Source: Hemiscyllium ocellatum (Eukaryota). From it: 64,000 nt of DNA. A program made the position numbers and the translations under genes. Shown one piece after another: positions 2,281-62,410 of the stretch (the first letter of the stretch is position 1; every line of letters begins with the position of its first letter). The stretch is taken from assembly GCF_020745735.1 (NCBI RefSeq), contig NC_083433.1, positions 17,061,363-17,125,362 of the forward strand, given 5' to 3'. The notes beneath the pieces are model-generated. The model was not told the DNA's origin. It was given only the letters and a program-made list of their open reading frames with translations, and made no database searches.

Positions 2281-2613
2281 TAGAATCCCTACAGTGTGGA
2301 AGCAGGCCATTTGGTCCATTGAGTCTACACCAACTGTCTGAAGAGCATCCCACCTAGACCCACGCTAATCCCTGTAACCCCATATTTCCCTTGGCTAATC
2401 CATGTAGCCTGCACCTCCCTGGACACTTTGGGCAATTTAGCATGGCCAATCCACCTAACCTGTACATCTTTGGACTGTGGGAGGAAACTGGAAGACCTGG
2501 AAGAAACCCACACAGACATGGGGAGAACGTGCAAACTTGGCACAAACAGTCCCTGAAGGCTGGAATTGAGCCTAGGTCCCTGGCACTGTAAGGCAGCAGT
2601 GCTAACCACTGAG
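2281..2613 (-). mobile_element. HE1/V-SINE
   Basis: tRNA-like head CTCAGTGGTTAGCACTGCTGCC, V-domain and CR1-type tail CCACACTGTAGGGATTCTA on the - strand. Confidence 0.85.
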
Positions 2614-4338
2614 AAGCATGCAGCCCAATGGGTTCGAAACAGGTGATTTCACTTCAGCACAGTTCAGGAGCCGTGCCGGACCGCCCTGGAGTAAGATCAC
2701 CTGATTCAGTACACTGGTATTTGGGTCATCTGTTCCAACAAGTTCAATATTAATTAGCAAAGAACCAAAACAAACTCCAGGATCTGTTTTGGACCATATC
2801 AATATTGAGTCATAGTGACAGCAGGTCACATAAGGGGGAAAAAGGCTTACTCTTCACTAGCAGCAACTCTCCTGAGACATTTCACATTGAGGTTGTATGT
2901 TTACAAGAACAGTGATGTGCAATGTAATATGGAACAATGGTTAATGCACATTGATGGTGTATGTGAGTTCAGCAATAATGGGATAGAATGAAACAGCATA
3001 TTCTGTGGCTGGTATATGCTGTTAAACAAAGTTAACATTCCAAAAAAATTGCATGTTAAAGTGTTTAATATAGCAGACACAATACTACTACTAGATTTCA
3101 TTAAGAGGTAAATTATCATCAGGTCTCTATTCTCTACGTGCATCTGGTTGCATTGTTTAGTATATTTCTTTTCTCTTGTTTTACTCATTTTTAGTCACTG
3201 TTGTGGGAAATTGATATATCGTTCAATCTGCTCGAGCAATTCACCCTCACCCTGTCATTCTCACGTTGCTCACCTCTATTGTGAAGATCGATAGCTCCTG
3301 ACTGTGGGAGATTGATAGCTTGCTAGTTCTCCCCAAAGACTTCCCAGTCTGTCGGAACTATGTGTTTTTCTAAGCTTTTCAAATATCTGAAGTTGGTATT
3401 GTTTATATTTATAAAGGTTAAAATTAAAATCACTGTCGTCCTGCTGTCTCATTATAGAGAGATAATTGGTAGTGGTTTAACTTAAGGGTCACCACACCGC
3501 AGAAAAGGGGAATGATAGGGAAGAAGTGCCCTAATAATAAACTCAGCTGGTGCAGGAATTGAACTGTGTTGTTGGTATCACAAACCAGTCTTCCACCTAA
3601 TTACTTATATACATATAAGCCATAATACGTAATTGTAGGTGTTCTCACCCAATCCTATGGTCCTGCAAGGATTGAGCACACTGGAAATGGGATCCTTAGT
3701 GGGATCAGTGAAGGAACTTTGAGGAAGTTACCAGGGTTCAGAATAGTTGCAGCCTGTTCTTGGATTGGGAAGAACTACAATGAATCCCAGTGATGTTAAA
3801 CGTAGATAGGGTCTCAGGAAAGTGTAGGGAAGTCCTGAGATGGCCAGGAGAGGCACATTTAGCAAATTAAAGTCTGTTAGGACTGGGGGAAATTGCTGAA
3901 ATTTGACAGTAGGTGAGTACATAGTCCAGGAGTGAAGGAATATGTGGAAATGGCACTAATTCCTTTTAGACTCTTGGGTCTTAACTCCCATTGCTACCTC
4001 TGTTGTCAACTGGTATCCATCTTTATGAACTGCCTTCAAATAATTTATTGAGTTTAAAAGCAAGTTGCAGCATTGTTAGTTTGTCGTCTTAAACAAGTCA
4101 GACTTTTTTTAGTTGACTCCATTAAATACCAGACTGGAAAGATTGCAAAACTTGCTTAAAACTGATACTCTGGGATAGGGTCTGTGCGAGATTCTGAGGG
4201 AGACTGAAACAATAGGGCGTCTGACTGATAGCTTAGAGGCTTCTTTGCAACTGAGTATAGGTTGGAAATAACCTACATCCTCCATCGGGGCACCAGTTTC
4301 AGAGGGGACTCAAACCAAGAGAGGGAGACCCGACAGAG

Positions 4339-5038
4339 TGTAACAGTACTGTGCCTTTAAGAGAGATGTGTTCTGTGCTGTTTCTCTTGTAGAGAGATAT
4401 TGTCACAATAGTTCAGAGATGTCTGTTTCACACAGGCGTTTGGTAAACAGCTTTGAGTAATCCCTGGTTGGTTATTTTAAATTAGACAAAAGAAGCATGA
4501 GTGGGTTGGGTCAGGGCTGACGCAGACCCAGGAAGGTTTTTAGTGTTGCTTTCAGCTCGTGATAGATTCCTGGTGCTGCTAAAATAACACCTTGAGTTCT
4601 CTGCTGCTCGAGTCTTAGAAGGTTTCCTTATAAAAAGAGGCAGAGTGTTTCTTTCAGTCTTCATTCTGAGGGACTGATGAGAGGCAGTATGTGAAAATCT
4701 TAACTGTTTGCTAAATTACTTTACCAAGGGTGTGTTTATAGAATACTGTCTATTTGGAACAGTTGATCATGAACGGTTATGTGATATATTATCTTGTTAA
4801 GTATTTCAATAGAGTTAAACTTATAACAATTCTTATGTTTTGAGTAGTAATTGTATTGTAAGAATGAAGTGTGTTTTGATTAAAGTCTGGTGGAGTAATC
4901 TGTGTCTAGGCTACTCGGCTAGTGGACATCTCGAACATAGGATCGTAAGCTTGCCTTGAAATAAATACGAAAGATAGAGGCTAGGCTTTCTCCTTCCTAT
5001 ATTTTGAGGGGGCTGGGGTGTCTGTCTGGTCCATAATA
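4339..5038 (+). mobile_element. Solo LTR (Gypsy-like)
   Basis: TGTAACA...CCATAATA termini with a 4-bp AGAG target-site duplication; copy at 31272-31962. Confidence 0.6.
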
Positions 5039-5195
5039 AGAGATGGCAGCATAAATATCTGGTGTAGGATTGAAGACCAGCACTGGCCATTGGAAGGACA
5101 GAAGTTGACCCCATTGTGATGATTGTGGCGAAGTTGGTGGAGGAAGATGTTTAGTGGGTGAAAGCAGTATTGACCACAAAGATGGAATTTTTGTT

Positions 5196-5937
5196 TGTTA
5201 TGGACCAGATCCCTTCAAAATATTTCAGGTAAGTAGCCTAGACTCTAACCTTTTCTTACATGAAGGGTAAATGTGAAGTGCTCTGTTCCAGATGCAATGT
5301 GGCTGGTCAAACTATTTGATGTTAAGCAAAAAGAGTCGATAAAGTGTGGGGCTAGAAAAAGCAGAGCAGGTCAGGCAGCATCTGAAGATCAAGAGAGTCG
5401 ACATTTCAGGCACAACCCTTCATCAGGACCATTAAGCAAAAACACAATTTATTTAAAAACTACAGTTAAAATACAAACAAAAGAAAGAAGAACTTAGAAT
5501 AACAACTCTGTTGAAAAACTTAACTGAATAATAGATACTATTACTAATTAACTGTTTCAATATAGTAACATCCCATAAACACATTCCTTGGCAAAGAGGC
5601 AAATTCAGACACAGATTCTTGCAGTTATCCAATCCAGAAGGAAAAAAAATCAAGATAAAATCCAGAAAGAGTAGCAGCACTGGAGTGTATGAAACCATGA
5701 CGATGAAATAGAAGTTGAGACCCTAAAAGCTTCTGAAGCTACTGAAAAACCAAATCCCAGAAATCCTCATTTTGCGGAGCTGGCCCCATCCATTCAGCTT
5801 GCATTTTAAAAGAACTCACGATCTCCCAAGCTGTTTCCTGAAGTGGTGTTAACTAGACAGCTCTGAACCTCTCATTCAATCTCTCTCTTAAAAGAAATCA
5901 GGACAAAATAACCTCTTAAAGCCACAGCATTGTCACA
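5196..5937 (-). mobile_element. Solo LTR related to 4339-5038, inverted, with a Penelope fragment inserted at ~5333-5430
   Basis: The - strand begins TGTGACAATGCTGTGGCTTTAAGAG and ends GTCCATAACA; flanks TGTT/TGCT; copy at 32121-32853. Confidence 0.55.
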
Positions 5938-8601
5938 TGCTTAACTTACAAAATCCTCTCCAGGGATAACAGCTCAAGTCTCATTGAGAAGGCACTCCTG
6001 ATTCACACTGCAGTTGTAAGCAAAGTTTGCTTTCTTGGCAGGTTTGGCCTGTCAGGCTCTGGAGATGTGAAGGACATCCTTAACATTATGGTAATCAGGT
6101 ACCCATTTCCTGACCCTCTAGTGGGCTCAGTGCTGGTGTGGGTGTTGTGGATAGGATCCTGGTTCTCTTTGGGATTGCGATCTGTTTGAATTTTGAAGGA
6201 AGAAAATAACCAAGTCTTTAGAGACAATCAGGAATTAGAACAATTTTTGTTGTCTCTGGAAATCAACATTGCAGCTACATGGAAGACAAAAAGATTTAAT
6301 ATCCCACAATTCCTTGTCTTTATCACTGATTCTAACTCCACCCTCTGACACCATCAACTGTATGGCTCTTAAGATTACAGCTCACCAACTTTCATTTTTC
6401 TGTATCTTATTCCCATCGAGTACAGTTTTAGTGCTAGTGTCAATCTGTATCCCTCCTGCGAGTTTGGGTTGATGTCTTGCCAGGCCAGTAGAACTCAAAA
6501 TTCTGAAAGAGCAAAGTGAAAAACAGAAATAGCTCCATTCTGACCAGTTTTGTTTTATCCTGGGCATGCTCTCAGACCTAGAAGATTCAACGTTGACAAT
6601 TAATTTGTCAAGATGAAAAACAAATCTAGTTTGAACCAAATTAGAGTGATTTAAGTGTCCAGGCTACATTGCAAATCATGTTGTCAGCAGATAATGAAAT
6701 GCTATGTAGTGTAACATTTTAGCATTATTCTGACCCCTTGGTTAAAAACTCAGAACCGTGTTCATTCCTGAGCTGAGTTTCTTGCCCATATTCTCTCCAT
6801 TGCTCAGCCATTTGCTCCCACCTTTGTAGATTCACCTGTCTCTAGCCTTGTCTCAGCTCTTTTGCAGCTGAAAAAATCATTCATGCCTTTGTTACCCCCC
6901 TTGACTATTTCAGTACTGTTATGGTCAGCTTCCAACACTAACAGATACTTGTATTGATGCAGCGTCATTAACAGGTTAAAGCACTTCATGAGCATTAACA
7001 GACAGAATTTGATGCTGATATAAATAAGATGATATTCAGACAACTGGCCAAAGGTGGTCCAATTCATAAGGATTAACTTAAAGAGTAACTTAAAGAAGAG
7101 GAGAATTGGAGAGATGGAGGTGTTTGTGAAAGCAATTTTAGAACTTGACCTCTTCCACCCTTTCAGGGCAGTAATGAGGAGAATTGTTTTCTTCCAGAGG
7201 GTTGTGTGACTTTGGATCTCTGCCTCTCTGTGAATATTTTTAAAATAGAGGTGGATAGATTCTTGTTAGGCAAAAGAATCAAGAGTTACCAGGAATAAGT
7301 TGGAATGTGGAATTCAAAGCACAGACAGATCAGCTATGATCTTATTGAATAGCAGATTAAGTTCGAGGGGCAGAATAGTCTACTTTTACTTTTATTTTTT
7401 ATGTTCATATGTAACTTCTGAGGCACCTGAATGGTGGGGTGAGGGAGGTTGGAACCTGTTAGAGATCAGGACTGGAGAAACAGAGGATGTAGGTTTTGAG
7501 GAGGCACAAAGTTGTGAAATATGGAAAAACAAGATTGAGAATTTTAATTAAAAATATGTATTTTACTGGTGTTATTACAACTAGAAATGCATATTAATAT
7601 ATGTTCATTATGGTCTTTCAACACTGCATATTGCAGAAAATATTTGAAGATCCTAACTCCAGCTATAATATTGATTTCTACAGGAATCGATGATTCACGT
7701 AAAGTTGTGATTTTCAGGAACAGAGCTATAATTTTAAATTGAGTAGTGAAGTCTTGGTTCAATTGTTTAGAAGCTTTAGATTAGATTCCACTGGATTAAG
7801 GTAAAGTTACCAGAGTCCAAGTGCATCTATGGCTTCTCTCGCATTTGGGAGAGAGAGGGGACAAGTGGCAGTTTAACCTGAGGGTCACCATGCCTCAGGT
7901 AAGGGAAGAGGCTGAGAATAAGAGTCCTACACGGTAACCACAGCCAGTGTGGAAATTGAACCCATGCTGTTGGCGTCACTGCATTATAAAGGAGCTGTCT
8001 AGCCAATTGAGCAATCCAACCCTCTGAAGTACTATGTGCAGTTTTGTTTTCCTTACCTCAGTAGGGATATTACTGCCATGGATGGGGTGCAATGAAGACG
8101 ACTCACCAGCCTTTTCCCAGGATGTAGCAGAAATGTATCTTCTAAACCATTGAAGCAAGACTTCACTACTCATTTTATGGTTCTGTTCCTGAAAAAACAG
8201 AACTGTAAGTGAATTATAGATGCCCATGGAAAAAAATGTTATAATGGGAATTACATTTCTTCAGAGATTTTCTGCCCAGAATTCCAGTGTACAATGTTGA
8301 AATACTGTAATGTCCATATATATTAATGTACATTCCTTGCTGTCTTTTTGGGAAAGGAACTGCTGTCCTTACCTGGTCTGGCCTGCATGTGACTCCAGAC
8401 CAGAATAATGTGGTTGAATTTTAACTGCCCTCTGGGCAATTAGGGTTGGCCAATAAATGCTGCTCTGGCCAATAATGTCAACACTGAATAAATGAATTTC
8501 ACAAACTCCCATCCTCTCTACTTCGTTTTCCCCCTTTAAGATATTCATGACCAGAATCGTATCTCCTAAAGTGATTCGGTATTTGGCTTTATAATTTTTA
8601 A

Positions 8602-8661
8602 GGAGGAAGCCCTGAAGAAGGGCTTATGCCCGAAACGTCGATTCTCCTGCTCCTCAGATGC
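8602..8661 (+). mobile_element. 60-bp Penelope-derived insertion carrying a minimal hammerhead motif
   Basis: CTGAAGA-A-GGGC-TTAT-GCCC-GAAAC-GTC; 10-bp TSD TAATTTTTAA; absent in unit 2 (~34370). Confidence 0.7.
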
Positions 8662-9019
8662 TAATTTTTAACCTAATTTTCTAATTTAACTAATTTTCAC
8701 TCAGGAGCAGATGTGACTTGAATTTGAGCTTTCCAGTCCAAGGCTAGGCACTGAGCCATAGTAATGTTTCTGTGAAGTAGCTTGGGACATCGTCTTACAT
8801 GAGTTAGATAAAGCTGTTGCTGTTTCATGTCCCCAGCATTTGCCGGAAACACTCTTTTTGCAGTATTGTATTTGAATTTTGTGCAAGAGTTGCATTAACT
8901 GATTCCATGCCTTTTGTGACCAGACCCATCAAAGCAATTTTTAAAAAAATAAAGTTGTTTGCAAGTGTGTAGCCACTACTTTACAGAGAGCAAGCAAATT
9001 ATAAAACTGCAGTTCCTGG

Positions 9020-9450
9020 CCAGGGTTTATTGTCGGTGGCCAGAGGTTTGTGTTTATGGGCAGGGTTTAGTGTCAGTGGGCAGGTTTTGGAGTCAGTGAG
9101 TTTCATGTCAGTGGGCTGGGTTTAGAGTTAGTAGGTTTAGTGACAGTATGCAGGGTTTAGAGTCAGTGGATTTTATGACAGTATGCAGGGTTTAGTGACA
9201 GTATGCAGGGTTTAGAGTCAGTGGATTTTATGACAGTATGCAGGGTTTAGTGCCAGTAGATGTTGTGACAGTATGCAGGATTTAGTGTGAGTAGACTTAG
9301 TGACAGGAGGCAGGGTTGAGATTCAGTGGGTTTTGTGACAGTATACAGGGTTTAGAGTAGTGGGCTGGGTTTAGAGTCAGTGGGCTGGGTTTAGAGTCTG
9401 GATTTAGAGTCAGTGGGTTGGGTTTAAAGTCAGTGGGTTTAGTGTCAGTC
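9020..9450. repeat. Degenerate G/T-rich minisatellite just upstream of sulfurtransferase A
   Basis: Tandem GGGTTTAGAGTCAGT and GGGTTTAGTGACAGTATGCA units ending ~36 nt before the ATG. Confidence 0.9.
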
Positions 9451-9486
9451 TGCTGGAGGTAATTCCGCGCACTGGGGGGAAGGAGA

Positions 9487-10066
9487 ATGGCGTTAGTGCA
9501 GGCTGTGGTATCTCCTGCCTGGCTGGCCAAGGCAATCAGCAGCGCTAAGGCCGGGCCGTTGCGGGTCTTGGACTCCTCTTGGTATTTGCCAGAAATGCAG
9601 AGGGACAGCAGGAAGGAGTTCAAGGAGAAGCATATTCCCGGCGCTACCTTCTTCGACTTGGACGAATGCAGAGACCGCTCCTCTCCTTACGAGCACATGA
9701 TGCCCGGGCAGGAGCTTTTCTCCCGATACTTGGCCAACCTGGGCATCTGCAACGACACCCACGTCGTCATCTACGATGCCAGCGATTTCGGGCTGTACAC
9801 TGCCCCCCGGGTCTGGTGGATGTTCCGGGCTTTCGGTCACAGCCGGGTGTCGGTGCTGGATGGCGGCTTTATCAATTGGTGCAGGGAGGGTCTCCCGGTC
9901 ACTTCGGAACTGCAGGACTACCCCGTGGCTGAGTACAAGGCAAAAGCCAAAGCCCAGGTCAAAAGTTACCAGGAGATCCTGGACAACATCCAGAGCAAAC
10001 AGTTCCAGCTGGTGGATGCCAGGCCAGAGGGCAGTTTCAAAGGAACCGAGCCTGAACCCTTAGAAG
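9487..10066 (+). CDS. MPST: 3-mercaptopyruvate sulfurtransferase-like, copy A, coding exon 1 (N-terminal rhodanese domain and linker)
   Basis: Motifs LDSSWYLP, HIPGATFFDLD, SPYEHM, VVIYD, APRVWWMFRAFGH, VLDGG and GTEPEP; CpG-rich; phase-1 donor AG|GTTCCT. Confidence 0.93.
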
Positions 10067-10619
10067 GTTCCTGAGAGAGTTTTATTTTACTTGTTTTAAC
10101 CCCCAAAAGAGCTTATTTCAGTATCGCACCCAGATCCTTTGTTTAAATTTCTTCCAACATTTCTAAGGCGGTTGCCAACTCTGCTTCCAGTAGTGGGCTA
10201 GTATGTATTGCCAATCAGGATTGGCTGTGTATGGGGAGATTGAGACAGTGAAGAGGTGGATATTTCCCTGAACTGATGCATTCTGTAATATGTTGCATTT
10301 ATTGTAATTTTAAACTGCTTTTCGGGTTTGCCAAGTTAGCTGTGACTTTCATTGCACTGTTACAGTAAGTTAGGGTAGTGATAGATTTATGCTGTGTATT
10401 TCACAGTCAAAGTTACCCAACTTGTTCACTTCACTTTTGAAAGGCAGACAGTAAATTTAGTCTGGTTACACTGAGGCCCTACTATGACACGGTTGACCAA
10501 GACCACATTTCATTGTCAAGTTTATTACAAAAGTGCCAGTGCTGAATTACAGAAAAACTGATTTAAACAGGCCAAATTACCTGATTTAAACAATCAGATT
10601 TCATATCAATTCAATACAC

Positions 10620-11232
10620 ATATAGACCGGGTGGTTAAGAAGGTGTTTAGCATACTTGCCTTCATTGCTCAGACCTTTGAGGATATGAGTTGGGATTTTG
10701 TGTTGAGGTTGTACAAAGTATTGGTGAGGCCACCTCTGGAAGATGATGTCCAGTTCCGGTCTCGCTGTTATAGGAAGATATTATTAAGCTAGGGAGGCTT
10801 CAGAAGAGATTTACCAGGATATTGCCAGGAATGGAGGGTTTGAGTTATAAAACTAGGCTGGGACATTTTTCACTGGAGCATCGGAGGGTGAGGGTGTTAT
10901 AGTGGTTTATAAAATTATGAGTGGTATAGATAAGGTGAATGGCAGGTGTCTTTTCCGTAGGGTGGAGGCTGACAAGACTATGGGTCATATTTATAAGGTG
11001 AGAGGAGAAAGGTTTAAAAAAGACATGAGGGTCAACTTTTTCACAGAGTGGTTGGTGTGTGGAATGAACCTCCAGACGAAGTGATGGATGTGGGTACAGT
11101 TACTTTTAACAGACATTTAGATAAGAACATGAATAGGAAAGGTTTGGAGGGGTATGGACCAGGAGCAGGCAGGTGGGACAAGTTTAGTTTGGAATTATGG
11201 TCAGCATAGACTGGTTGTGCTGAAGGGTCTGT
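10620..11232 (+). mobile_element. CR1-type LINE 3' fragment (intronic; copy at ~38330-38942)
   Basis: Decayed RT C-terminus (VYKIMSGIDKVN, GERFKKDMRVNFFT) followed by the CR1 tail. Confidence 0.85.
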
Positions 11233-11286
11233 TTTGTCCAAGAATACCGATGATGTTTGTCCATCTCTGTGATACAAACATTTAAT

Positions 11287-11628
11287 GGGTAGCATGGTGG
11301 CTCAGTGGTTAGCACTGCTGCCTCACAATGCCAGGGAATGGGTTCAATCCCACCCTTGGGCAACTGTCTTTGTGGAGTTTGCACATTCTCCCCATGTCTG
11401 CATGGGTTTCCTCCGGGTTCTCCAGTTTCCTCCCATACTCCAAAGGTGTGCAGGTTAGGTGAATTGGTCATGCTAAATTGCCCGTGGGATGTATAGATTA
11501 GGTGGATTAGTCAGGGGAAATGAGGAGTAATAGGATAGGAGAATAAGTCTGGGTCAGTAAATCTTTGGAGGGTCAGTGTGGACGTGTTGGATGAAATGAC
11601 CTGTTTCCACACTGTAGGGATTCTATGA
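11287..11628 (+). mobile_element. HE1/V-SINE (intronic; copy at 38996-39341)
   Basis: GGTGGCTCAGTGGTTAGCACTGCTGCC head, GGTTCAATCC B box, V-domain and tail. Confidence 0.85.
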
Positions 11629-12762
11629 AATAGAGAATGTAAGCAGGAAAGGTATTTGAATTCTAATAAACCTCTAATGTTTAAACATCCATTGTTGATA
11701 AGGCTAACAAACAGTGTTGCAAATGTTTGACTGTATGTTCAGGTTAATAGATTATGTGGTATTAACTTGCTTGTTTGTCTTATGGGAATATCATTACTCA
11801 TCAACTCACTTCAAATTTTAAACAGTGATATTAAAAGACTCCACTGAAGTCTGATTTAAGAGATCTGAAGGTACAGATTCCGAATTGTCCTGTAACACAT
11901 TAATCTAGCAGTGGAGGCCCACATCACATATAATGACCATGTTCAGTAATACAGCAACAAATAATTTGTCTTACATTCCTTTTCTAAGCAACCAGGGTAC
12001 TGCCACTCTGGAAGCTCATTATTATGGCTGGGTTTTCAAACCAAGTATCTTAGAAATCTACAGTAGTCAGGATAATCTATTCCTGTTGTATGTATAATCC
12101 CCCACCCTCACCAGGCAGGTTACTCATAGATTAGCAAAAGCAAATGTTAGGGGAGATTCCAAGTGCATTGAAATCTGAAAATTAGGGCCTCCACTGCTGA
12201 TTCCAAAGAAATCCAGACTTGCACTTGTTTCGTATCTTTCACAAGCACAGGCAATCTTTTCAGCCAGAAAAGTTCTTTTGAAGAATGATCTGCATTGGAA
12301 AGTGGCAGATTCAGCAGCGCAGAGTCAATTTCCCCTAAACACAACGTAAGAACGACCAGATAATCTTTTTGACTCAAGATAATCTTGAGTGAAGGATAAA
12401 TGCTGACCAAGACAAGTGGATCAGCTCCTCCATCTTTCTTCCAGTAGTTTTAAGGGTGATCAGCCAAGCTCAAAGGAATAAAACCCTTTTTTATCCAAAG
12501 GGGCGAACACCTCATATTCCAACCCAAAAACATTAGGAGAGCAGATTGGATAAAGTAAGAGGTTTTGGTTTCAGAAACCTGTTAACTTCTTGCAGGACAT
12601 CTGAGGAGAAATTGGACACAGGTTCTGAGAACAATCGTGGTATATTTGCCAGTATGCTAGTGAGATTTGTGCAGCATTTGACCATTGCGACAGATGTGAT
12701 TTCCTTGAACTGGATTGGGTTTCCTTCGATTCACACTTTTTAAATTTGTCTTATTTCTCAAG

Positions 12763-13064
12763 ATATTGAACCTGGGCACATCCCCGACAGTATCAATATC
12801 CCCTTTGAGACCTTCATGGATCCAGAGACTCTCAGGATGAAGAGTGAAAAGGAGCTGCAGTGCTTGTTTGAGGATCACAATGTCGACCTGAAGAAACCAC
12901 TGGTAGGGACGTGTAGTATCGGGATCACTGCCTGCTTTGTTGTCCTTGGTGCCCAAATCTGTGGGAAAGAAAATGTGATGATCTACGATGGTTCCTGGCA
13001 AGATTGGTTCACCCGGGCCGACCCCAGTCACATTATCTCGGAGAGAAAGGAGAAAGTCAAATAA
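12763..13064 (+). CDS. MPST: 3-mercaptopyruvate sulfurtransferase-like, copy A, coding exon 2 (catalytic domain)
   Basis: Acceptor TTATTTCTCAAG| joins exon 1 in frame (G+AT=Asp): DIEPGHIPDSINIPF...KPLVGTCSIGITAC...YDGSWQDW. 580+302=882 nt, 293 aa. Confidence 0.93.
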
Positions 13065-24398: not shown

Positions 24399-25483
24399 TG
24401 GGACGAGTTTATTTTGGGAATCTCGATATGCATGAATGAGTTGGACCGAAGTGTCTGTGCTGTATAACTCTATCATTCCAAGTGTCCTGTGTATTTGTAG
24501 CTACTTCATACAAATATGTAGGAGCCATTCAGCCCTTCAGTCCTGTTCTACCAATCGATTAGATCATGGTGTACAGCTATTTTTTAAGTAATTTTGAGAA
24601 GATATTCTGATATTTTGACTCCTTCAATGAATTTGGGATTATGATATATTGAAAAGGTGAGATGGAATATCCAGGGTACTTGAGGACTCTAACAGTGTGG
24701 AGAAATGGAAGGGTAGATTGCTTAGACAGTGAAATCAGAGTATAATTGAGAAGGATCACTCTTTCTGACCATAAAGCTCTTTTATTCTGATATAACAGTC
24801 AGTAACTGTCAAATGGACTCATTCCAAAATAAACACATTAATGCCTTGGTTGTAGTGCAGACATCAAGTTTACACAAACACATTAACAGTGATGTTGTAT
24901 TCAGAGAATCAAACCACCTTGGCAATGGAAGACTGAAAAAGGTCTGGAAGATGAATTATATGGTCACATAGACTGACCATGCCAAGATCTATGGAACAGG
25001 CCATGAGCCTGTCTCTAGAAGCTGTAATTGAGTGGCACCTCTTCACATCCAGTGTGTGATGTGGCAAGATACTCACCAGCTCTCACTGCCTGCCACATTC
25101 CTTTGGGAAGCATTTACAGACTGCGAATTAACTTGTTCAGCCAGATTATGAACTCGTCTTCACATGGCCGTGAAATCCTTAAGTGGGACATGAACCCAGA
25201 ACTTCTGACCCAGAGATAAGAGCTCTATCCACTACAACACAAGCAAACCTGCTGTTATTTTGACGAATTTCCCTTTAAATTTCTCAAATGCTCCATTTGG
25301 CAATGAGTTCTATATTCGAACTGCTTTGCTGTTTAATTCCCTGTTGGATTTATCAGTGACTATCACATCAGTCACATTTAAACAGGAACACGTTCTCTAC
25401 ATCTTATGTTTGAAAATTAACTGATCAGTATTCATGGTAGTTACATATCTGTGAGTTAATGTGAGTCTTGTTTGCTTCCACAG

Positions 25484-26581
25484 AGGAGTATCAGAAGAAA
25501 AAGGCTGCAGATCACACAGAGGAAAATCTCCAGCACATGCTCGGTGCCAGGTTCCTGACTGAGAGCAAAGTGACTCAACAAGTGAGTGTTTCTAACACGT
25601 CAGTTTCTCACCATCTCCCACGTGTGTCGGAGTTTTGCAGATTGAAGGCCAGCTCAAAAACGTCTTGACTTTGTTGATAGCACTGGATTCTGAAGCTGCG
25701 TTAGACAAGGCTGGACAAAGGACTGGACCCATAAGAATGTGTCAGTCGTGGTTCAGTGGGTCACACGCTCACCTCAAAGTCTCAAGTCTAGAAACTTGCC
25801 ACAAAATGCAGACTGAGGGACTGCTGCACAGTCAGAGGTTCAGCCTTTTGGATATGACCTTAAACCAAGGTGCTGTCTGCCTTCTCAGGTGACTGTAAAA
25901 GGAAAAAAATCGCAGGGCTGTATTTTGAAGAAAGGTAAGGGAGTTCTACCAGTGTCGATGCTTATCCCTCAACCAATATCATTAAAACAGATGGTCAGCC
26001 CTTTCTAAACAAAAGGAGAAAGACTTTCATTTTTATCGTGCTTTTCATCACTACAGCCAGTGATGTAATTTCTGAAGTGTGCATCTCTGTTGTAATGATG
26101 GGAACATGACAGCCAATTGATACACAGCCAGCTCCGACAGACAGCAATGTAACAATAACCACATTGTGTGCCTTTGTGATGTTGAGTGAGGGATAAATAT
26201 TGGCCAGGACACTGGGGCGTACACGTTCTGCAGGACCTATGGGAAATTAGACAAATGTGGGAGTAATGATATCACATGATGACCTAAATGGCCTCCTTCT
26301 GCTGTATGATTCTGCGATTCTGTGAATGGTGTTGTAGAAATATAAAGCAGTTTCGTCCTTCAGTTTAGCACACAGGCTGCCAGTCAAAACTGATGCGGAA
26401 ATGAACTCTCAATGTAAAATCTTAATTTTTTAAAAAAAGTTAACTTTAGGTCTTGAATTTTTGTCGAGGAAGGAGAGCAAAGGATTGCCCAGAGAAAGGG
26501 GAAGTGAAGAAGGAAAAGAAGAGCATATTCACACATAGTGACTTTAGAAAGTTTGAGAGAGAGTATTTTGGGGCTTCCTAA
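25484..26581 (+). pseudogene. RPS19BP1: RPS19BP1/AROS partial duplicate: exon 3 (25484-25581) and exon 4 (26450-26581) only
   Basis: EYQKKKAADHTEENLQHMLGARFLTESKVTQQ | VLNFCRGRRAKDCPEKGEVKKEKKSIFTHSDFRKFEREYFGAS*. Splice sites are intact; exons 1 and 2 are deleted at ~19400 and ~22130. Confidence 0.85.
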
Positions 26582-32600: not shown

Positions 32601-34620
32601 CATGACTATGAAATAAAAGTTTCCCACTCTGTTGAGACCCTAAAAGCTTCTGAAGCTACTGAAAAACCAAAACGCAGAAATTCTGATCTGGGGGACCTGG
32701 CCCCACCCATTCAGCCTGCATTTAAAAACAAACCCATGACCTCCCAAGCTGTTTCCTGAAGTGGTGCTAGCTAGACAGCTCCGAACCTCTCATTCAATCT
32801 CTCTCAAAAGAAATCAGGACAAAATAACCTCTTAAAGCCACAGCATTGTCACATGCTTAACTTACAAAATCCTCTCCAGGGATAACAGCTCAAGTCTCAT
32901 CGAGAAGGCACTCCTGATTCACACTGCAGTTGTAAGCAAAGTTTGCTTTCTTGGCAGGTTTGACCTGTCAAGCTCTGGAGATGTGAAGGAAATCCTTAAC
33001 ATTATGATAATCAGGTACCCATTTCCTGACCCTCTAGTGCTGGGGCTCAGTGCTGGTGTGGGTGTTGTGGATAGGATCCTGGTTCTTCCTGGGATTGCGA
33101 TCTGTTTGAATTTTGAAGGAAGAAAATAACCAAGTCTTTAGAGACAATCAGGAATTAAAACAATTTTTGTTGTCTCTGGGAATCAACATTGCAGCTAAAT
33201 GGAAAACAAAAAGATTTAATATCCCACAATTCCTTGTCTTTATCACTGATTCTAACTCCACCCTCTGACACCATCAAGTGTATGGCTCTTAAGATTACAG
33301 CTCACCAACTTTCATTTTTCTGTATCTTATTCCCATCGAGTACAGTTTTAGTGCTAGTGTCAATCTGTATCCCTCCTGCGAGTTTGGGTTGATGTCTTGC
33401 CAGGCCAGTAGAACTCAAAATTCTGAAAGAGCAAAGTGAAAAACAGAAATAGCTCCATTTTTGTTTTATCCTGGGCATGCTCACAGACCTAGAAGATTCA
33501 ACATTGACAATTAATTTGTCAAGGTGAAAAACAAAACTAGTTTGAACCAATTTAGAGTGATTTAAGTGTCCAGGCTACATTGCAAATCATGTTGTCACCA
33601 GATTATGTAGTGTAACATTTTAGCATTATTCTGTCCCGAGGTTAAAAGTTCTGTACCGTGTTCATTCCTGAGCTGAGTTTCTTACCCATATCCTCTCCAT
33701 TGCTAAGCCATTTACTTCCACAGTGTGGAAATTAACCCATGCTGTTGGCACCACTGTGCATTATAAAGGAGCTGTCTAGCCAATTGAGCAATCCAACCCT
33801 CTGAAGTACTATGTGCAGTTTTGTTTTCCTTACCTCAGGAGGGATATTACTGCCATAGATGGGGTGCAATGAAGACGACTCACCAGCCTTTTCCCAGGAT
33901 GTAGCAGAAATGTATCTTCTAAACCATTGAAGCAAGACTTCACTACTCATTTTATGGTTCTGTTTCTGAAAAACACAACTGTAAGTGAATTATGGATTCC
34001 CATGGGAAAAAATGTTATAATGGGAATTACATTTCTCCAGAGATTTTCTGCCCAGAATTCCAGTGTACAATGTTGAAATACTGTAATGTCCATATATATT
34101 AATGTACATTCCTAGCTGTCCTTTAGGGAAAGGAACTGCTGTCCTTACCTGGTCTGGCCTGCACGTGACTCCAGACCAGAACAATGTGGTTGAATTTTAA
34201 CTGCCCCTCTGGGCAATTAGGGGTGGCCAATAAATGCTGCTCTGGCCAATAATGTCTACACTGTATAAATTTCAAAAACTCTCGTCCTCTCTATTTTGTT
34301 TTCCCCCTTAAAGATATTCATGACCAGAATCTACCTCCTAAAGTGAGTCAGTACTTGGCTTTATAATAATTTTAAAACTAATTTTCTAATGAACCTCAGG
34401 AGCAGATGTGACTTGAAGTTGAGCCTCCAAGTCCAAGGGTAGGGATACTACCACTGAGCACAATAATATTTCTGTGAAGTAGCTTGGGACATCGTCTCAC
34501 ATGAGTTAGATAAAGCTGTTGCTGTCCCCAGCATTTGCAGGAAACACTCTTTTTGCAATATTGTATTTGAATTTTGTGCGAGTTGCATTAACTGGTGCCA
34601 TGCCTTTTGTGACCAGAGCC
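29608..34620 (-). pseudogene. Unidentified multi-exon pseudogene or lncRNA, unit 2 (candidate exons: ?-34501, 33965-33834, partial ~33721-33686, 33422-33306, 33101-32866, 29673-29608)
   Basis: Paralogous splice sites are conserved; the acceptor of the third exon is removed by a ~1.1-kb deletion at ~33721. Confidence 0.5.
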
Positions 34621-34709
34621 ATCAAATCAATTTTAAAAAAATAACATTGTTTGGAAGTGTGCAGCCAGCACTTTACAGGGAGCAAGCAAGTGTTAAAACT
34701 GCAGTTCCT

Positions 34710-35205
34710 GGCCAGGGTTTATTGTTAGTAGCCAGAGTGTTAATTGCCAGGGTTTGGTGGCAGTGGGTTTAGTGACAGTTGACAGGGGTTTAGTGTCAGT
34801 GGGTTTACTGACAGTGTGCAGTGTTTGGAGTCAGTGGGTTTAAGCGACAGTGTGCAGGGTTTAGAGTCAGTGTGTAGTGACAGTTTGTAGTGTTTAGTGA
34901 CAGTGGGTTTAGTGACAGTTTGCAGTGTTGACAGTCAGTGGGTGTAGTGACAGTAGGCAGGGTTTACAGTCAGTGGGTTTAAGTGACAGTGTGCAGGGTT
35001 TAGAGTCAGTGGGTTTAGAGTCAGTGAGTTTAGTGACAGTATGCAGGCTTTAGAGTCAGTGGATTTAATGACAGTGGGCTGGGTTTGGAGTGAGTGGATT
35101 TAAATTTAATGACAGTGGGCAGGATTTCGTGTCAGTAGGCTGGGTTTAGAGTCTGAATTTAGAGTCAGTGGGTTGGGTTTAAAGTCAGTGAGTTTAGTGT
35201 CAGTC
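34710..35205. repeat. Degenerate G/T-rich minisatellite just upstream of sulfurtransferase B
   Basis: Same unit types as 9020-9450 in a different order and number. Confidence 0.9.
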
Positions 35206-35241
35206 TGCTGGAGGTAATTCCGCGCACTGGAGGAAAGGAGA

Positions 35242-35821
35242 ATGGCGTTAGTGCAGGCTGTGGTATCTCCTGCCTGGCTGGCCAAGGCAATCAGCAGCGC
35301 TAAGACCGGGCCGTTGCGGGTCTTGGACTCCTCTTGGTATTTGCGAAAAATGCAGAGGGACGGCAGGAAGGAGTTCAAGGAGAAGCACATCCCCGGCGCT
35401 ACCTTCTTCGACTTGGACGAATGCAGAGACCGCTCCTCCCCTTACGAGCACATGATGCCCGGGCAGGAGCTTTTCTCCCGATACTTGGCCAACCTGGGCA
35501 TCTGCAACGACACCCACGTCGTCATCTACGATGCCAGCGATTTCGGGCTGTACACTGCCCCCCGGGTCTGGTGGATGTTCCGGGCTTTCGGTCACAGCCG
35601 GGTGTCGGTGCTGGATGGCGGCTTTATCAATTGGTGCAGGGAGGGTCTCCCGGTCACTTCGGAACTGCAGGACTACCCCGTGGCTGAGTACAAGGCAAAA
35701 GCCAAACCCCAGGTCAAAAGTTACCAGGAGATCCTGGACAACATCCAGAGCAAACAGTTCCAGCTGGTGGATGCCAGGCCTGAGGGCAGATTCAAAGGCA
35801 CTGAGCCTGAACCCAGAGAAG
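35242..35821 (+). CDS. MPST: 3-mercaptopyruvate sulfurtransferase-like, copy B, coding exon 1
   Basis: Paralogue of 9487-10066; retains GRFKGTEPEPRE; phase-1 donor AG|GTTCCT. Confidence 0.93.
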
Positions 35822-35968: not shown

Positions 35969-37906
35969 GGAAAAAGTGAGGACTGCAGACGCTGGAGATC
36001 AGAGATGAAAATGTGTTGCTGGAAAAGCGCAGCAGGTCAGGCAGCATCCAAGGAGCAGGAGAATCACAACCTCGATACGGGGTTGTGGGACTATCCTGCG
36101 CCGCCCGTTTCTACCTGCCTGCCCCGGCCGACCCATTGTCTCAGCCTGCTCCTGCCCCACCGAACTCATCTCTGCATACCTCGACACGGTCCTGTCCCCC
36201 CTTAGTCCAAGAACTCCCCACCACCTACGCCCTCTACCTCCTACATGATTTTCGCTTCCCCGGTCCCCAACGCCTTATCTTCACCATGGACATCCAGTCC
36301 CTGTACACCTCCATCCCCCATCATGAAGGATTCAAAGCCCTCCGCTTCTTCCTTTCCCACCGTACCACCCAGTACCCTTCCACTGACACCCTCTTTCGAC
36401 TGACTGAACTGGTCCTCACCCCGAACAACGTCTCTTTCCAATCCTCCCACTTCCTCCAAACCAAAGAAGTAGCCATGGGCACCCGCAAGGGCCCCAGCTA
36501 TGCCTGCCTCTTCGTAGGATATGTGGAACAGTCCATCTTCCGCAGCTACACTGGCACCACCCCCCACCTTTTCCTCCGCTACATCGATAACTGTATCGGC
36601 GCTGCCTCGTGCTCCCACAGGAGGTTGAACAGTTCATCCACTTTACCAACACCTTCCACCCCGACCTCAAATTTACCTGGACCATCTCAGACTCCACCCT
36701 CCCCTTCCTAGACCTCTCCATTTCTATCTTGGACGACCGAATCAACACGGACATTTACTATAAACCGACCAACTCCCACAGCTACCTAGACTACAACCTC
36801 CTCCCACCCTGCCCCCTGTAAAAACGCCATCCCATATTCACAATTCCTTCGTGTCCGCCACATCTGCTCCCAGGAGGACCAGTTCCAATACCAAACAACC
36901 CAGATGGCCTCCTTCTTCAAAAACTGTAATTTTCCCCCAGACGTGATCGACGATGCTCTCCACCGCATCTCCTCCACTTCCTGCTCCTCCGGCCTTGAGC
37001 CCCACCCCTCCAATCGCCACCAGGACAGAACCCCACTGGTCCTCACCTACCACCCCACCAACCTCCATATACATCGTATCATCCGTCGTCATTTCTGCCA
37101 CCTCCAAACGGACCCCACTACCAGAGCTATATTTCCCTTCCCTTCCCTATCAGCATTCCAAAAAGACCACTCCCTCCATGACTCCCTTATCAGATCCACA
37201 CCCCCCCAATCTCCACTCCCCGGCACCTTCCCCTGCAACGGCAAGAAATGTAAAACCTGCGCCCACACCTCCCCCCTTACTTCCCTCCAAGGCCCCAAGG
37301 GATCCTTCCATATCCGCCACAACTTCACCGGCACCTCCATACACATCATTTACTGCATCCACTGCACCCTCTATATTGGGGAGACAGGCCGCCTACTTGC
37401 GGAGCGTTTCAGAGAACACCTCTGGGACACCCGGACCAACCAACCCAACCACCCCGTGGCTCAACACTTCAACTCCCCCTTCCACTCCACCAAGGACATG
37501 CAGGTCCTTGGACTCCTCCATCGCCAGACCATAGCAACACGACGGCTGGAGGAAGACCGCCTCATCTTCCGCCGAGTAACCCCACAAGGGATGAACTCAG
37601 ATTTCTCCAGTTTCCTCATTTCCCCTCTCCCCACTTTGTCTCAGTCCCAACCCTCAAACTCAGCACCACCTTCCTGACCTCTGCGTCCCCAACCCCACTC
37701 CGGCCTATCATCCTTACCTTAACCTCGTTCCACCTATCGCACTTCCAACGCCCCCTCCCCCAAGTCCCTCCTCCCTACCTTTCATCTTATCCTGCTTGGC
37801 ACACTCCCCTCATTCCTGAAGAAGGGCTCATGCCCGAAACGTCGATTCTCCTGCTCCTTGGATGCTGCCTGACCTGCTGCGCTTTTCCAGCAACACATTT
37901 TCAGCT
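35969..37906 (+). mobile_element. Penelope-like retroelement (5'-truncated, frameshifted RT plus GIY-YIG endonuclease) in the intron of copy B
   Basis: TMDIQSLYTSI, AMGTRKGPSYA, LRYIDN, TDIYYKPT, YCIHC..YIGETGR..ERFREH. A partial inverted pseudo-LTR sits at the 5' end; 16-bp TSD CTAGTAT(G/T)TATTGCCA; empty site at ~10198-10213. Confidence 0.92.
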
Positions 37907-40476: not shown

Positions 40477-40778
40477 ATATTGAACCTGGGCACATCCCCG
40501 ACAGTATCAATATCCCCTTTAATACCTTCATGGATCCAGAGACTCTCAGGATGAAGAGTGAAAAGGAGCTGCAGTGCCTGTTTGAGGATCACAATGTCGA
40601 CCTGAAGAAACCACTGGTAGGGACGTGTAGTATCGGGATCACTGCCTGCTTTGTTGCCCTTGGTACCCACATCTGTGGGAAAGAAAACGTGATGATCTAC
40701 GATGGTTCCTGGCAAGAGTGGTTCACCCGGGCCGACCCCAGTCACATTATCTTGGCGAAAAAGGAGAAAGTCAAATAG
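40477..40778 (+). CDS. MPST: 3-mercaptopyruvate sulfurtransferase-like, copy B, coding exon 2
   Basis: DIEPGHIPDSINIPFNTF...TCSIGITAC...YDGSWQEW; in-frame join gives 293 aa. Confidence 0.93.
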
Positions 40779-43712: not shown

Positions 43713-46394
43713 AAAGTCATAGAGATGTACAGCATGGAAACACTCCCTTCGATCCAACCCGTCTATGCCGACCAGATATCCCAAGCCAATCTAGTCCCAC
43801 CTGCCACTACCTGGCCCATATCCTCCAAACCTTTCCTATTCATATACCCATCCAAATGCCTCTTAAATGTTGCAATTGTACAGCCTCCACCACATCCTCT
43901 GGCAGCTCATTCCGTACACGTACCACCCTCTGTGTGAAAAAGTTGCCCCTTAGGTCTCTTTTATATCTTTCCCCTCTCACCCTAAACCTATGCCCTCTAG
44001 TTCTGGACTCCCTGACCCCAGGGAAAAGACTTTGTCTATTTATCATATCCATGCCCCTGATAATTTTGTAAACCTCTATAAGGTCAGCCATCAGCCTCCG
44101 ACGCTCCAGGGAAAACAGCCCCAGCCTGTTCAGCCTCTCCCTGTAGCTCAGATCCTCCAACGCTGGCAACACCCTTGTAAATCTTTTCTGAACCCTTTCA
44201 AGTTTCACAACATCTTACCGATAGGAAGGAGACCAGAATTGCTCGCAACCTTCCAACAGTGGCCTAACCAATGTCCTGTACAGCTGCAACATGACCTCCC
44301 AACTCCTGTACTCAATACTCTGACCAATAAAGGAAAGCATACCAAACGTCTTCTTCACTATCCCATCTACCTGCCACTCCACTTTCAAGGAGCTATGAAC
44401 CTGCACTCCAAGGTCTCTTTGTTCAGCAACACTCCCTAGGACCTTACCATTAAGTGTATAAGTCCTGCTAAGATTTGCTTTCCCAAAATGCAGCACCTTG
44501 CATTTATCTGAATTAAACTCCATCTGCCACTTCTCCACCCATTGGTCCAGATCCTGTTGTAATCTGAGGTAACCCTCTTCGCTGTCCACTACACCTCCAA
44601 TTTTGCTGTCATCTGCAAACTTACTAACTGCACCTCTTATGCTCGCATCCAAATCATTTATGTAAATGATAAAAAGTAGAGGGCCCTGCACCGATCTTTG
44701 TGGCACTCCACTGGTCACAGGCCTCCAGTCTGAAAAACAACCTTCCACCACCACCCTCTGTCTTCTACCTTTGAGCCAGTTCTGTATCCAAATGGCTAGT
44801 TAACATAGAACATTACAGTGCAGTACAGACCCTTCGGCCCTCAATGTTGCGCCGCCCTGTCATACTAATCTGAAGCCTATCCCACCTATACTATTCCATG
44901 TACATCCATATGCCTGTCCAATGACGACTTAAATGCACTTAAAGTTGGTGAATCTACTACCATTGCAGGCAAAGTATTCCATTCCCTTATTACTCTTAGT
45001 TAAGTAACTACCTCTGACATCTGTCTTATACCTATCTCCCCTCACTTTAAAGTTGTGTCCCGTCGTGTTTGGCGTTCCCATACTTGGAAAAAGGCTCTCC
45101 TGTCCACCCTATCTAACCCTCTGATTATCTTGTATGTCTCTATTAAGTCACCTCTCAACCTTCTTCTCTCTAACGAGAACAGCCTCAAGGCCCTCAGCCT
45201 TTCCTCGTAAGACATTCCTTCCATACCAGGCAACATCCTAGTAAATCTCCTCTGCACCCTTTCCAAAGCTTCCACATCCTTCTCATAATGCGGTGACCAG
45301 AACTGTACACAATACTCCAAGTGTGGCCAGAGCTTTGTACAGCTGCAGCATAACCTCCTGGTTCCGAACTCAATCCCTGTATTAATAAAGGCCAAAACAC
45401 TGTATGCCTTCTTAACAACCCTGTCAATCTGGGTGGCAACTTTCAGGGATCTTTGTACATGGACACCGAGATCTCTCTGCTCATCTGCACTCCCAAGAAT
45501 CTTGCTATTAGCCCAGTACTTTGCATTCCAATTACTCCGTCTCAAGTGTATCACCTCACACTTGTCCACATTAAACTCCATTTGCCACCTCTCAGCCCAG
45601 CTCTGCATCCTATCCATGTCTCTCTGCAACCTACTACATCCTTTGTCACTATCCACAACTCCACCGACCTTAGTGTCGTCTGCACATTTACTAACCCACC
45701 CTTCTAAGCCCTCATCCAGATCATTTATAAAAATGACGAACAGCAGTGGACTCAACACCGACCCTTGCGGTACGCCGCTAGTAACTGGACACCAGATGAA
45801 CATGTTCCATCAACTACAACCCTCTGTTTTCTTTCAGTAAGCCAATTACTGATCCATACTGCTATGTCTCCCACAATCCCATTCCTCCGCATTTTGTATA
45901 ATAGCCTACTGTGGGGAACCTTATCGAACGCCTTGCTGAAATCCATATACTCTCATCTACCTGTTTGGTCACTTTGTCAAAAAAGTCAATAAGATTCGTT
46001 AGGCACGACCTACCCTACACAAAACAGTGCTGACTGTCCCTGATCAAATTATTATTTTCTAGATAGTTATAAATCCTATCTCTTTTCCAACACTCACTGG
46101 TCTGTAATTACCAGGGTTGTCTCTACTACCCTTTCTTGAACAAGGGAACCGCATTTGCTATCCTCCAGTCCTCAGGCACTATTCCTGTAGACAATGATGA
46201 TTTGGAGATCAATGCCAAAGGCTCGGCAATCTCTTCCCTTGCTTCCCAGAGGATCCTAGGATAGATCCCATCCTGCCTAGGGGAATTGTCTATTTTCACA
46301 CACTCTATTCTCCCTGAATTCCATGAGATCTAACCTTGCTAATCAGTATCCCATGGGGAACCTTGTCGAACGCCTTACTGAAGTCCACATGGAT
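43713..46394 (-). mobile_element. CR1 LINE (43713-44801 and ~46306-46394) with a second CR1 nested inside (~44802-46305)
   Basis: Two RT sets: SGVPQRSVQGPLLF..YINDL..KFADDSK and SGVPQGSVLSPLLF..FINDL..ADDTK. 7-bp TSD CAAATTT; absent in unit 1. Confidence 0.92.
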
Positions 46395-57945: not shown

Positions 57946-58947
57946 TGAGTGTCCTGTGCACTTGTATCCATTGCATAGAAATAGGTGGGGGGGCCATTCA
58001 GCCCCTCAATCCTATTCTGCCAATCAATTAAATCATGGTATATATTTTTAAAAATAATTTTGGTGAGGTATTCTGATGTTTTCATTCTTTTAATGGTTTA
58101 GGGTTTTGGTAGATTGAAAAGGTGAGATGGAATGTCCAGGGTAGTTGAGGACCCTACCAATGTGGACAAATAGAAGGGTAGATTGCTTAGACAGTGAAAG
58201 CAAAGGATAATTGAGAAGGATCACTCTTTCTGACCCTAAAGTTTTTTTGTTCTGATATAACAGTCAGTAACTGTCAAATGGACTAATTCAAAATAAATTA
58301 ATGCCTCAGTTGTAATGCAAGCATCAAGTTTGCACAAGCATGCTACCAGTGATGTTGTATTCAGAGAATCAAACCACCTTAGCAATGGAAGACTGAAAAA
58401 GGTCTGGAAGATGAATTATATGGTCACATAGACTGATCATGCCAAGATCTATGGAACAGGTCATGAGCCTGTCTCTAGAAGCTGTAATTGAGTGGCACCT
58501 CTTCACATCCAGCGTGTGGTGTGACAAGATACTCACCTGCTCTCACTGCCTGCCACATTCCTTTGGGAAGCATTTACAGACTGCGAATTAACTTGTTCAG
58601 CCACATTGCGAACACATCTTCACAAGGCCATCAAATCCTTAACTGGGACTTGAACCCGGAACTTCTGACCCAGAGGTAATAGCGCTGTCCACTGCAACAC
58701 ACTGCTGTTATTTTGCAGACTTTCCATTTAAATTTCTCTACGCTATGAACCGCAAATGCTCCATTCGTCAATGAGTTCTATATTCGAACTGCTTTGCTGT
58801 TTAATTCCCTGTTGTATTAGTGACTATTACGTCAGTCACGTTTAAACAGGAATACGTTCTCTACATCTTATGTTTGAAAATTAACTGATCAGTATTCATG
58901 GTAGTTACATATCTGTGAGTTAATGTGAGTCTTGTTTGCTTCCACAG

Positions 58948-59045
58948 AGGAGTATCAGAAGAAAAAGGCTGCAGATCACACAGAGGAAAATCTCCAGTAC
59001 ATGCTCGGTGCCAGGTTCCTGACTGAGAGCAAAGTGACTCAACAA
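58948..59045 (+). CDS. RPS19BP1: AROS coding exon 3
   Basis: TTCCACAG| ... |GTGAGT, 98 nt, phase 1-0; EEYQKKKAADHTEENLQYM...VTQQ. Confidence 0.9.
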
Positions 59046-62039: not shown

Positions 62040-62410
62040 CACAGTATTCTGGGTTCAGGTCCCACCCCCGGACCTGGATGCAAAGATCAAGGCTGACCTT
62101 CCAATGCGGTACTGAGAGGATGCTCCACTCATAGAAGTAACTTGCTACAAATGTGATGTACATCTGCCCGATTGGATGAATGTAAAATCACCTGTAACTC
62201 CATGTTGAAGAGAAGTTATTCTTGGTTAATTGGTCAATATTTATCACACAATCAATGTCTCAAAAAGAGCAAACAATCTGATTATTATCACCCTGCTGTT
62301 TGTGGGAGCTGGCTGTGTGTAGATTGGCTGATGTGTTTCCTGCAATACAACAGTGACTGGAAGAACCTTTGGTGGTTGTCAAATGTGCCTTATAAATGCC
62401 AGTCTGTTTT
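62040..62410 (+). mobile_element. DeuSINE-like element (truncated at the unit junctions ~1438 and 28618; relatives at ~14895-15070, ~25745-26220, ~59210-60030)
   Basis: Deu-domain-like TGCTGTTTGTGGGAGCTGGCTGTGTGTAGATTGGCTG...ACAACAGTGACT. Confidence 0.6.

Follow-up and report, generated by a model that had tools for sequence, protein, structure and literature searches.

3-Mercaptopyruvate sulfurtransferase (MPST) is one of three vertebrate enzymes that produce H2S and persulfides, with a substrate pocket that is regarded as invariant. In the human enzyme, 3-mercaptopyruvate forms hydrogen bonds with Arg188 and Arg197, and there is a proposed Ser-His-Asp triad (2026 review, PMC12926118). The two arginines anchor the carboxylate and carbonyl groups of 3-mercaptopyruvate and are critical for specificity (PMC8513928, PMC5228037). 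Where mouse 3MST is complexed with inhibitors, R197 has swung out of the site (PMC5228037). On mutagenesis of these arginines, our literature searches returned secondary statements only. Here, we analyze a 64,000-nucleotide stretch of the genome of the shark Hemiscyllium ocellatum (NCBI RefSeq assembly GCF_020745735.1, contig NC_083433.1, positions 17,061,363 to 17,125,362; hereafter the window), which contains two MPST-like genes, copies A and B. We show that copy A encodes Ser and Leu in place of the two arginines, and that the first of these replacements is shared with the corresponding genes of two related species. An earlier reading of the window, made from its letters without database searches (the sequence-only reading), had noticed both replacements and proposed that copy A is neofunctionalized rather than decaying.

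Copy A is 55-57% identical to mammalian MPST/3MST (PDB entries 4JGT, 3OLH, 5WQJ and 5WQK; E = 5e-110), with which it shares two rhodanese domains, a six-residue loop holding the catalytic Cys, the His and Asp of the proposed triad, and a two-exon coding structure. It departs from these enzymes in S183 and L192, in a Glu at the equivalent of K40, in a loop that reads CSIGIT rather than CGSGVT and lacks the triad Ser, and in belonging to a tandem trio of paralogues where mammals have a single gene. Thiosulfate sulfurtransferase (TST, or rhodanese; 1RHD, 8Q5Z and 8AGF) has the same fold (template-modeling (TM) score 0.94-0.95) and, like copy A, is without the second arginine. Unlike copy A, it retains the first arginine, and its loop for thiosulfate, CRKGVT, is cationic; copy A is not TST-like in charge. 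A rhodanese-type representative with this loop (P0138) has R at 183 and D at 192, in agreement with the sequence-only reading, in which only the first arginine was taken to be shared with rhodanese. Yeast Tum1 (3UTN) resembles copy A in its tandem-rhodanese fold (TM 0.88). Tum1 and MPST can accept sulfur from the persulfide of Nfs1 and hand it on to Uba4/MOCS3, a transfer for which 3-mercaptopyruvate binding is not needed. By analogy, a persulfide relay of the Tum1 type is a plausible model for copy A.

Results

Replacement of both substrate arginines in copy A

Copies A and B each have two coding exons on the plus strand, with GT/AG splice sites, and each encodes 293 amino acids. Over the spliced coding sequences (CDSs) they differ by 15 amino acids and 26 nucleotides. 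At the 3′ end of exon 1, positions 10021-10065 of copy A translate as RPEGSFKGTEPEPLE, and positions 35776-35820 of copy B as RPEGRFKGTEPEPRE. Codon 183 is AGT in copy A and AGA in copy B; codon 192 is TTA in copy A and AGA in copy B. In a phmmer search of the PDB, S183 and L192 align with both Arg residues of human MPST in '...TGRFRGTEPEPRDG...' (3OLH/4JGT, E ~1e-110), and offsets anchored on C248, H74 and D63 give these the human numbers R188 and R197. Translation, spliced CDSs, alignment and literature thus bear out what the sequence-only reading had said of the two copies: S183/L192 in A against R183/R192 in B, 15 of 293 residues different, and both sites equivalent to the arginines that bind 3-mercaptopyruvate. 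The features of the two genes are as follows.

9487-10066, plus strand: copy A exon 1 (codons 1-193 and the first base of codon 194), CpG-rich; from the open reading frame (ORF) and tblastn. The GT donor is at 10067-68.
9592-9594, plus strand: codon 36, GAA (Glu); K36E is a marker of A-type copies and adjoins the active-site contact residue P35 (human P39).
10026-10103, plus strand: island of A/B divergence, running from the last part of exon 1 into the intron.
10033-10035, plus strand: codon 183, AGT (Ser), ancestrally AGA (Arg); human MPST Arg188.
10060-10062, plus strand: codon 192, TTA (Leu), ancestrally AGA (Arg); human MPST Arg197.
10067-12762, plus strand: copy A intron, GT...AG; 3.6-5.4% divergent from the copy B intron.
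12763-13064, plus strand: coding part of copy A exon 2 (codons 194-293, stop TAA); from tblastn and splice sites.
12912-12929, plus strand: copy A loop C244-S-I-G-I-T (canonical MPST: CG[S/T]GVT).
35242-35821, plus strand: copy B exon 1, with R183 at 35788-35790, R192 at 35815-35817 and a derived R35 at 35344-35346.
40477-40778, plus strand: coding part of copy B exon 2, with loop CSIGIT at 40626-40643.

Among the other vertebrate MPST homologues, site 183 is Arg in 95 of 97 and site 192 in 96 of 97, and position 36 is Lys in 84 of 97. The codon AGA stands at both arginine sites in copy B and also in the canonical (C-type) gene of Chiloscyllium punctatum (locus L001, whose exon 1 contains an N gap), which indicates that the copy A state is derived at both. 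By the genetic code, AGA can become TTA through TGA (a stop) or ATA (Ile), so one of the two paths does pass through a stop codon, as had been pointed out. The Ile192 of C. punctatum, judged from the protein only, fits the stop-free route. The chance that both named sites fall among the 15 of 293 that differ is small (p = 0.0025), a post hoc figure for sites that lie 27 nucleotides apart inside a local cluster of differences. Additionally, 3 of 13 published inhibitor-contact residues differ between copies A and B (p = 0.023).

The products of copies A and B are identical to XP_060705130.1 (P0128) and XP_060705651.1 (P0002), respectively, both annotated by NCBI as '3-mercaptopyruvate sulfurtransferase-like' of H. 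ocellatum, and the window contains no N letters. Copy A is therefore already annotated as MPST-like, but it is undescribed with respect to its arginine loss: literature searches found no papers on any of the arginine-loss variants reported here, in sharks or elsewhere, and none on MPST in hemiscylliid sharks.

Fold and active-site loop

The AlphaFold model of copy A has a predicted local distance difference test (pLDDT) score of 93.4. It superimposes on human MPST with TM scores of 0.91-0.97 (root-mean-square deviation 1.1 Å for 4JGT) and on mouse 3MST (5WQJ/5WQK) with TM scores of 0.94-0.96. Pfam PF00581 matches two stretches of the protein (E = 3e-25), as expected for two rhodanese domains, its best PDB and database matches are MPST, and it falls inside the vertebrate MPST clade. 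What it lacks of MPST is the CG[S/T]GVT loop and the two substrate-binding arginines, the latter being present in copies B and C; what it lacks of TST is the cationic CRKGVT loop and the conserved first arginine.

Cys244 (human C248), His70 and Asp59 are all present in copy A. The sequence-only reading had listed these as retained catalytic residues, which is correct as far as it goes; the Ser of the proposed triad (human S250), however, is Ile246 in both copies. Their common loop, CSIGIT, also has Ser for Gly directly after the catalytic Cys. A CGSGVT loop is found in 72 of 103 vertebrate homologues, and among the H. ocellatum copies a canonical loop occurs only in a third paralogue, which lies outside the window. 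Copy B has a further peculiarity at residue 35, which is Arg here and Gln in the B-type copy of C. punctatum, as against Pro in 93 of 97 vertebrate MPSTs; the human equivalent, P39, contacts inhibitors, and the B-type copies seem to be changing a pocket residue of their own. With a derived loop common to copies A and B, and with the third paralogue as the canonical gene, copy B is a poor 'normal' comparator, the part in which the sequence-only reading had cast it. The proper reference would be the C-type gene, and the locus reads as a three-step series, from C through a B-like state to A.

An A/B/C trio in three hemiscylliid species

The third H. ocellatum paralogue (XP_060705388.1, P0127) is canonical, with R at both sites and the loop CGTGVT. 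Three gene models each are found in C. punctatum and C. plagiosum, and the same A/B/C trio is present in all three hemiscylliid species, as follows.

C-type: R at 183, R at 192; loop CGTG(I/V)T, as in other sharks.
B-type: R at 183, R at 192; loop CSIGIT.
A-type: S at 183; L (H. ocellatum), I (C. punctatum) or R (C. plagiosum) at 192; loop CSIGIT.

E36 and S183 are common to the A-type copies of all three species, while the B-type, C-type and outgroup shark sequences all have K36, R183 and R192. In a maximum-likelihood (ML) tree, the hemiscylliid copies form one clade (100/99), sister to the MPSTs of Stegostoma and Rhincodon, which indicates that the triplication is specific to Hemiscylliidae. 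Within it, copies A and B form a strongly supported subclade (100/99), which places the CSIGIT loop change before the arginine losses. A single mutational burst that made both replacements is excluded by S183 with R192 in C. plagiosum and by I192 in C. punctatum; the changes were sequential.

Exon 1 has undergone concerted evolution. All three C. plagiosum paralogues share residues A66, D69 and T154, and every Chiloscyllium copy has R132. In one C. plagiosum model (XP_043535746, P0124), an exon 1 with no difference from the C-type copy's is followed by an AB-type exon 2; this is either a chimeric gene model or a product of whole-exon gene conversion.

Signs of maintenance in copy A

Copy A shows none of the pseudogene features considered, namely frameshifts, stops, lost splice sites and CpG-island loss, and its 293-codon ORF is intact. 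Exon 1 has an observed/expected CpG ratio of 0.60 in copy A and 0.61 in copy B, compared with 0.28 for the window. The retained frame and CpG-rich exon of the sequence-only reading are thus upheld. No indels separate the A and B CDSs, where the rate in the flanking noncoding DNA would predict 3.3 gap events (P = 0.04), and exon 1 differs by 2.4%, against 3.6-5.4% in the alignable noncoding DNA around the two genes. Copy A has 7 derived residues and copy B has 8, so copy A is not decaying faster than copy B. The A-type ORF is intact in two species, which supports the idea that the change is something other than the random decay of a copy in one assembly.

The two arginine codons lie in the island at 10026-10103, where 12 A/B differences cluster in 78 nucleotides (permutation p = 0.0035-0.006). 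Polarized with copy B and the C. punctatum C-type sequence, these are mostly A-specific. In the models of Innan and Teshima, a peak of divergence around a selected difference is expected from selection against gene conversion. An island such as that around codons 183 and 192 would result if selection removes conversion tracts that cover these sites.

Sequencing runs offer hints of transcription. Run types were guessed: two small runs from the reference animal are RNA-like, and four runs come from other individuals. The two RNA-like runs contain 0.82 and 0.60 of the sampled words of copy A exon 2 and 3′ untranslated region, where 0.36 would be expected if only copy B (repeat unit 2) were represented. 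The four runs from other individuals contain 0.84-0.91 of the copy A exon 1 words, versus 0.62 that are shared with copy B. The A-type gene of C. punctatum has two isoform models, one of which splices into a downstream exon that is also present in the window. Isoform models of the NCBI pipeline are usually based on RNA-seq. A search of transcript-derived fragments with residues 150-293 of copy A returned none from hemiscylliids.

Recurrence of the double loss

In a survey of 1.84 billion representative proteins with copy A as query, 120 matches had the loop Cys aligned. R183 is present in 111 of these and R192 in 92. All 9 homologues without R183 are also without R192 (Fisher p = 6.6e-7, not corrected for relatedness), and a side chain other than Gly follows the Cys in 5 of these 9, versus 7 of the remaining 111 (p = 4e-4). 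The nine include 'TST-like' proteins of sea urchin and Lingula and the 'MPST' of lampreys.

The lamprey case is the most striking of these. MPSTs of Lampetra planeri/fluviatilis and Lethenteron reissneri (P0161 cluster) have Ser and Leu at sites 183 and 192 and the loop CISGVT; that of Petromyzon marinus (P0294) has Arg and Leu, with the same loop. The Lampetra-type sequence is also found on an intron-less 1.45-kb Logan contig. Like copy A, therefore, lamprey MPST can have Ser/Leu at the R188/R197 sites and has a side chain after the loop Cys. It differs in a long insert between the domains and in the order of losses, since R/L in Petromyzon and S/L in Lampetra indicate that the lamprey arginines were lost stepwise, site 192 first, from a gene conserved among lampreys. 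Because the lamprey protein is only 39% identical to copy A, the event is independent and convergent. Only one kind of lamprey MPST-family protein was recovered, in searches that left a canonical lamprey paralogue possible. Together, the lamprey and family data indicate that the double loss is a recurrent, stepwise and stably inherited trajectory rather than a one-off lesion. In bony fishes, three teleost MPST-like paralogues (P0045, P0115 and P0119) have lost one arginine and have loops CSSGVT, CDSAVT or CSCGVT. As judged from these residues, they look like partial versions of the same trajectory.

Organization of the window

Copies A and B each lie within a tandem repeat unit, and between the units the longer aligned blocks are 84-98% identical. 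A third unit begins at 60811 (window 60811-64000); over its first ~440 bp it matches the starts of units 1 and 2 at 89-97% identity, and thereafter at ~77%. A search for orthology between the C. punctatum locus L001 and this third unit found interspersed repeats only. No further rhodanese exon was detected in the window by tblastn with MPST proteins, and hence no head-to-head TST; nor was a minus-strand gene relic recognizable among the ORFs at 2400-9300.

Several other features of the units are evident. The 0.8 kb upstream of the start codons (8700-9486 versus 34397-35241) is 13% divergent with 14 gap events, far more than the exons, introns and more distal flanks, and contains short tandem-like repeats; copies A and B may thus have different promoters. 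Fragments of reverse transcriptase, resembling those of long interspersed nuclear elements, occur at 35969-37906 and 44215-45803. One such fragment lies inside an insertion of ~1.9 kb in the copy B intron, which copy A is without. A short conserved exon stands downstream of each sulfurtransferase copy on the plus strand (25483-25581 and 58947-59045). It is weakly AROS/RPS19BP1-like in a C. plagiosum model, and it is the alternative 3′ exon of the C. plagiosum A-type model and of C. punctatum A isoform X2. Apparently, a portion of a second gene belongs to the repeat unit, or the unit gives rise to read-through transcripts.

Discussion

We lean toward the view that copy A is a maintained paralogue that has lost the anchoring of 3-mercaptopyruvate and exchanges sulfur with non-anionic partners, while copy C keeps the ancestral job. 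The canonical C-type gene (R183, R192, loop CGTG[I/V]T) would have been duplicated in Hemiscylliidae, giving rise to the tandem triplication. In the common ancestor of A and B, the loop would have changed to CSIGIT, which removes the triad Ser and places a side chain where MPST has Gly. The A lineage would then have acquired K36E and R183S, followed by the replacement of R192 with I or L. Copy A probably still carries a persulfide on Cys244, given that the fold, the six-residue cradle loop, His70 and Asp59 are kept. Loss of two guanidinium groups, which anchor the carboxylate and keto groups of the substrate, together with that of the neighboring lysine, would turn the pocket from cationic to neutral or acidic, and the side chains of Ile246 and Ser245 would reshape the floor of the site. 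Such a protein should make very poor use of the anions 3-mercaptopyruvate and thiosulfate. Copy A, and in part copy B, would be freed to move sulfur to or from a non-anionic partner. Candidate partners of copy A include a protein persulfide relay of the NFS1/TUM1/MOCS3/thioredoxin type, and neutral small persulfides or polysulfides.

It is also possible, though we consider it unlikely, that copy A reflects relaxed constraint or incipient non-functionalization. A redundant copy would have lost 3-mercaptopyruvate binding by drift, residue 192 would be drifting because R183 was already gone, and the gene would look intact through low divergence and gene conversion. A number of observations fit this alternative and weigh against maintenance of copy A. 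The ratio of nonsynonymous to synonymous substitution rates (dN/dS, NG86 method) between A and B is 0.56 (0.36 for exon 1, 1.14 for exon 2; dS = 0.044) and not significantly different from 1 (p = 0.22). Exon 2 divergence, at 4.0%, equals that of the noncoding flanks. The sites of the derived changes in copy A are no less conserved than average; this and the dN/dS values are both compatible with relaxed constraint. Residue 192 differs in each species (L, I and R). Exon 1 is clearly subject to concerted evolution, and an ORF without selection on it could stay intact through gene conversion from B or C. The island at 10026-10103 takes in synonymous and intronic changes, and part of it may be mutational or the edge of a conversion tract. 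Within the AB clade of the ML tree, A pairs with B by species (70/91), and monophyly of the A-type is neither shown nor rejected (approximately unbiased test, p = 0.35). In the RNA-like runs, words of copy A exon 1 are found at 0.49-0.52, no higher than from copy B alone. The A-type model of C. plagiosum, with R192, has no normal exon 2 and is truncated after exon 1.

Several findings are nonetheless difficult to square with drift. S183 and E36 persist in three species in the midst of a homogenized exon. The CDS has accumulated no indels where 3.3 are expected, copy A changes no faster than copy B, and its CpG content is undecayed. Words from the 3′ end of copy A are over-represented in the RNA-like runs. 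Finally, loss of the same two arginines has been stably retained in lampreys and other animals. The proposal of the sequence-only reading, that copy A is neofunctionalized and not decaying, thus gains from the shared A-type state, the intact ORF, the confidently predicted fold and the recurrence elsewhere, but not from dN/dS, which is not significantly below 1, from the derived changes, which are similar in number in A and B, or from the A-type phylogeny. The uncharged or hydrophobic donor or acceptor that it had suggested for copy A is a conjecture.

Less probable still is that copy A remains a 3-mercaptopyruvate sulfurtransferase, in which backbone amides of the loop, Ser245, His70 and water hold the substrate and the arginine losses merely tune Km/kcat or redox regulation. 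In favor of this, the catalytic Cys, His70, Asp59 and fold are all kept, and R197 moves out of the site in the mouse complexes (PMC5228037). Moreover, the sole MPST-family protein recovered from lampreys is without R192 in all species, and without R183 in Lampetra and Lethenteron. Against this, in the human structure the substrate is hydrogen-bonded by both arginines, which are reported to be critical for specificity, they are 98-99% conserved in vertebrate MPSTs, and K36E takes away a further positive charge. Retention of the canonical paralogue alongside copy A argues for a division of labor and against merely altered kinetics. An artefact, by which the A-specific letters would be assembly or consensus errors or the mark of a collapsed or chimeric copy, can be rejected, since the copy A protein exactly matches an NCBI model in a window with no N, S183 recurs in the independent assemblies of two other species, and runs from four other individuals contain more of the copy A exon 1 words than copy B alone would supply.

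Tentatively, the A-type, with the B-type one step earlier, could represent an undescribed subtype of vertebrate sulfurtransferase with a non-cationic active site, convergent in lampreys, where Ser and Leu again stand in for the arginines, and in several invertebrates. It would act on protein persulfides or on non-anionic donors or acceptors, and its retention in epaulette and bamboo sharks might be connected with life on hypoxic, sulfide-prone reef flats. The hosts are classic hypoxia-tolerant sharks, and a link of copy A to their handling of sulfide is a conjecture, but one worth testing. More generally, a single gene cluster here contains a natural three-step series, from the canonical C through B, with its altered loop, to A, in which the loop is altered and the arginines are gone as well. 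Together with the replay in lampreys, this series provides ready constructs for separating the contributions of the arginines and the loop. With it, retargeting of tandem-rhodanese enzymes, be it toward non-anionic substrates or toward a protein persulfide relay, could be tested directly.

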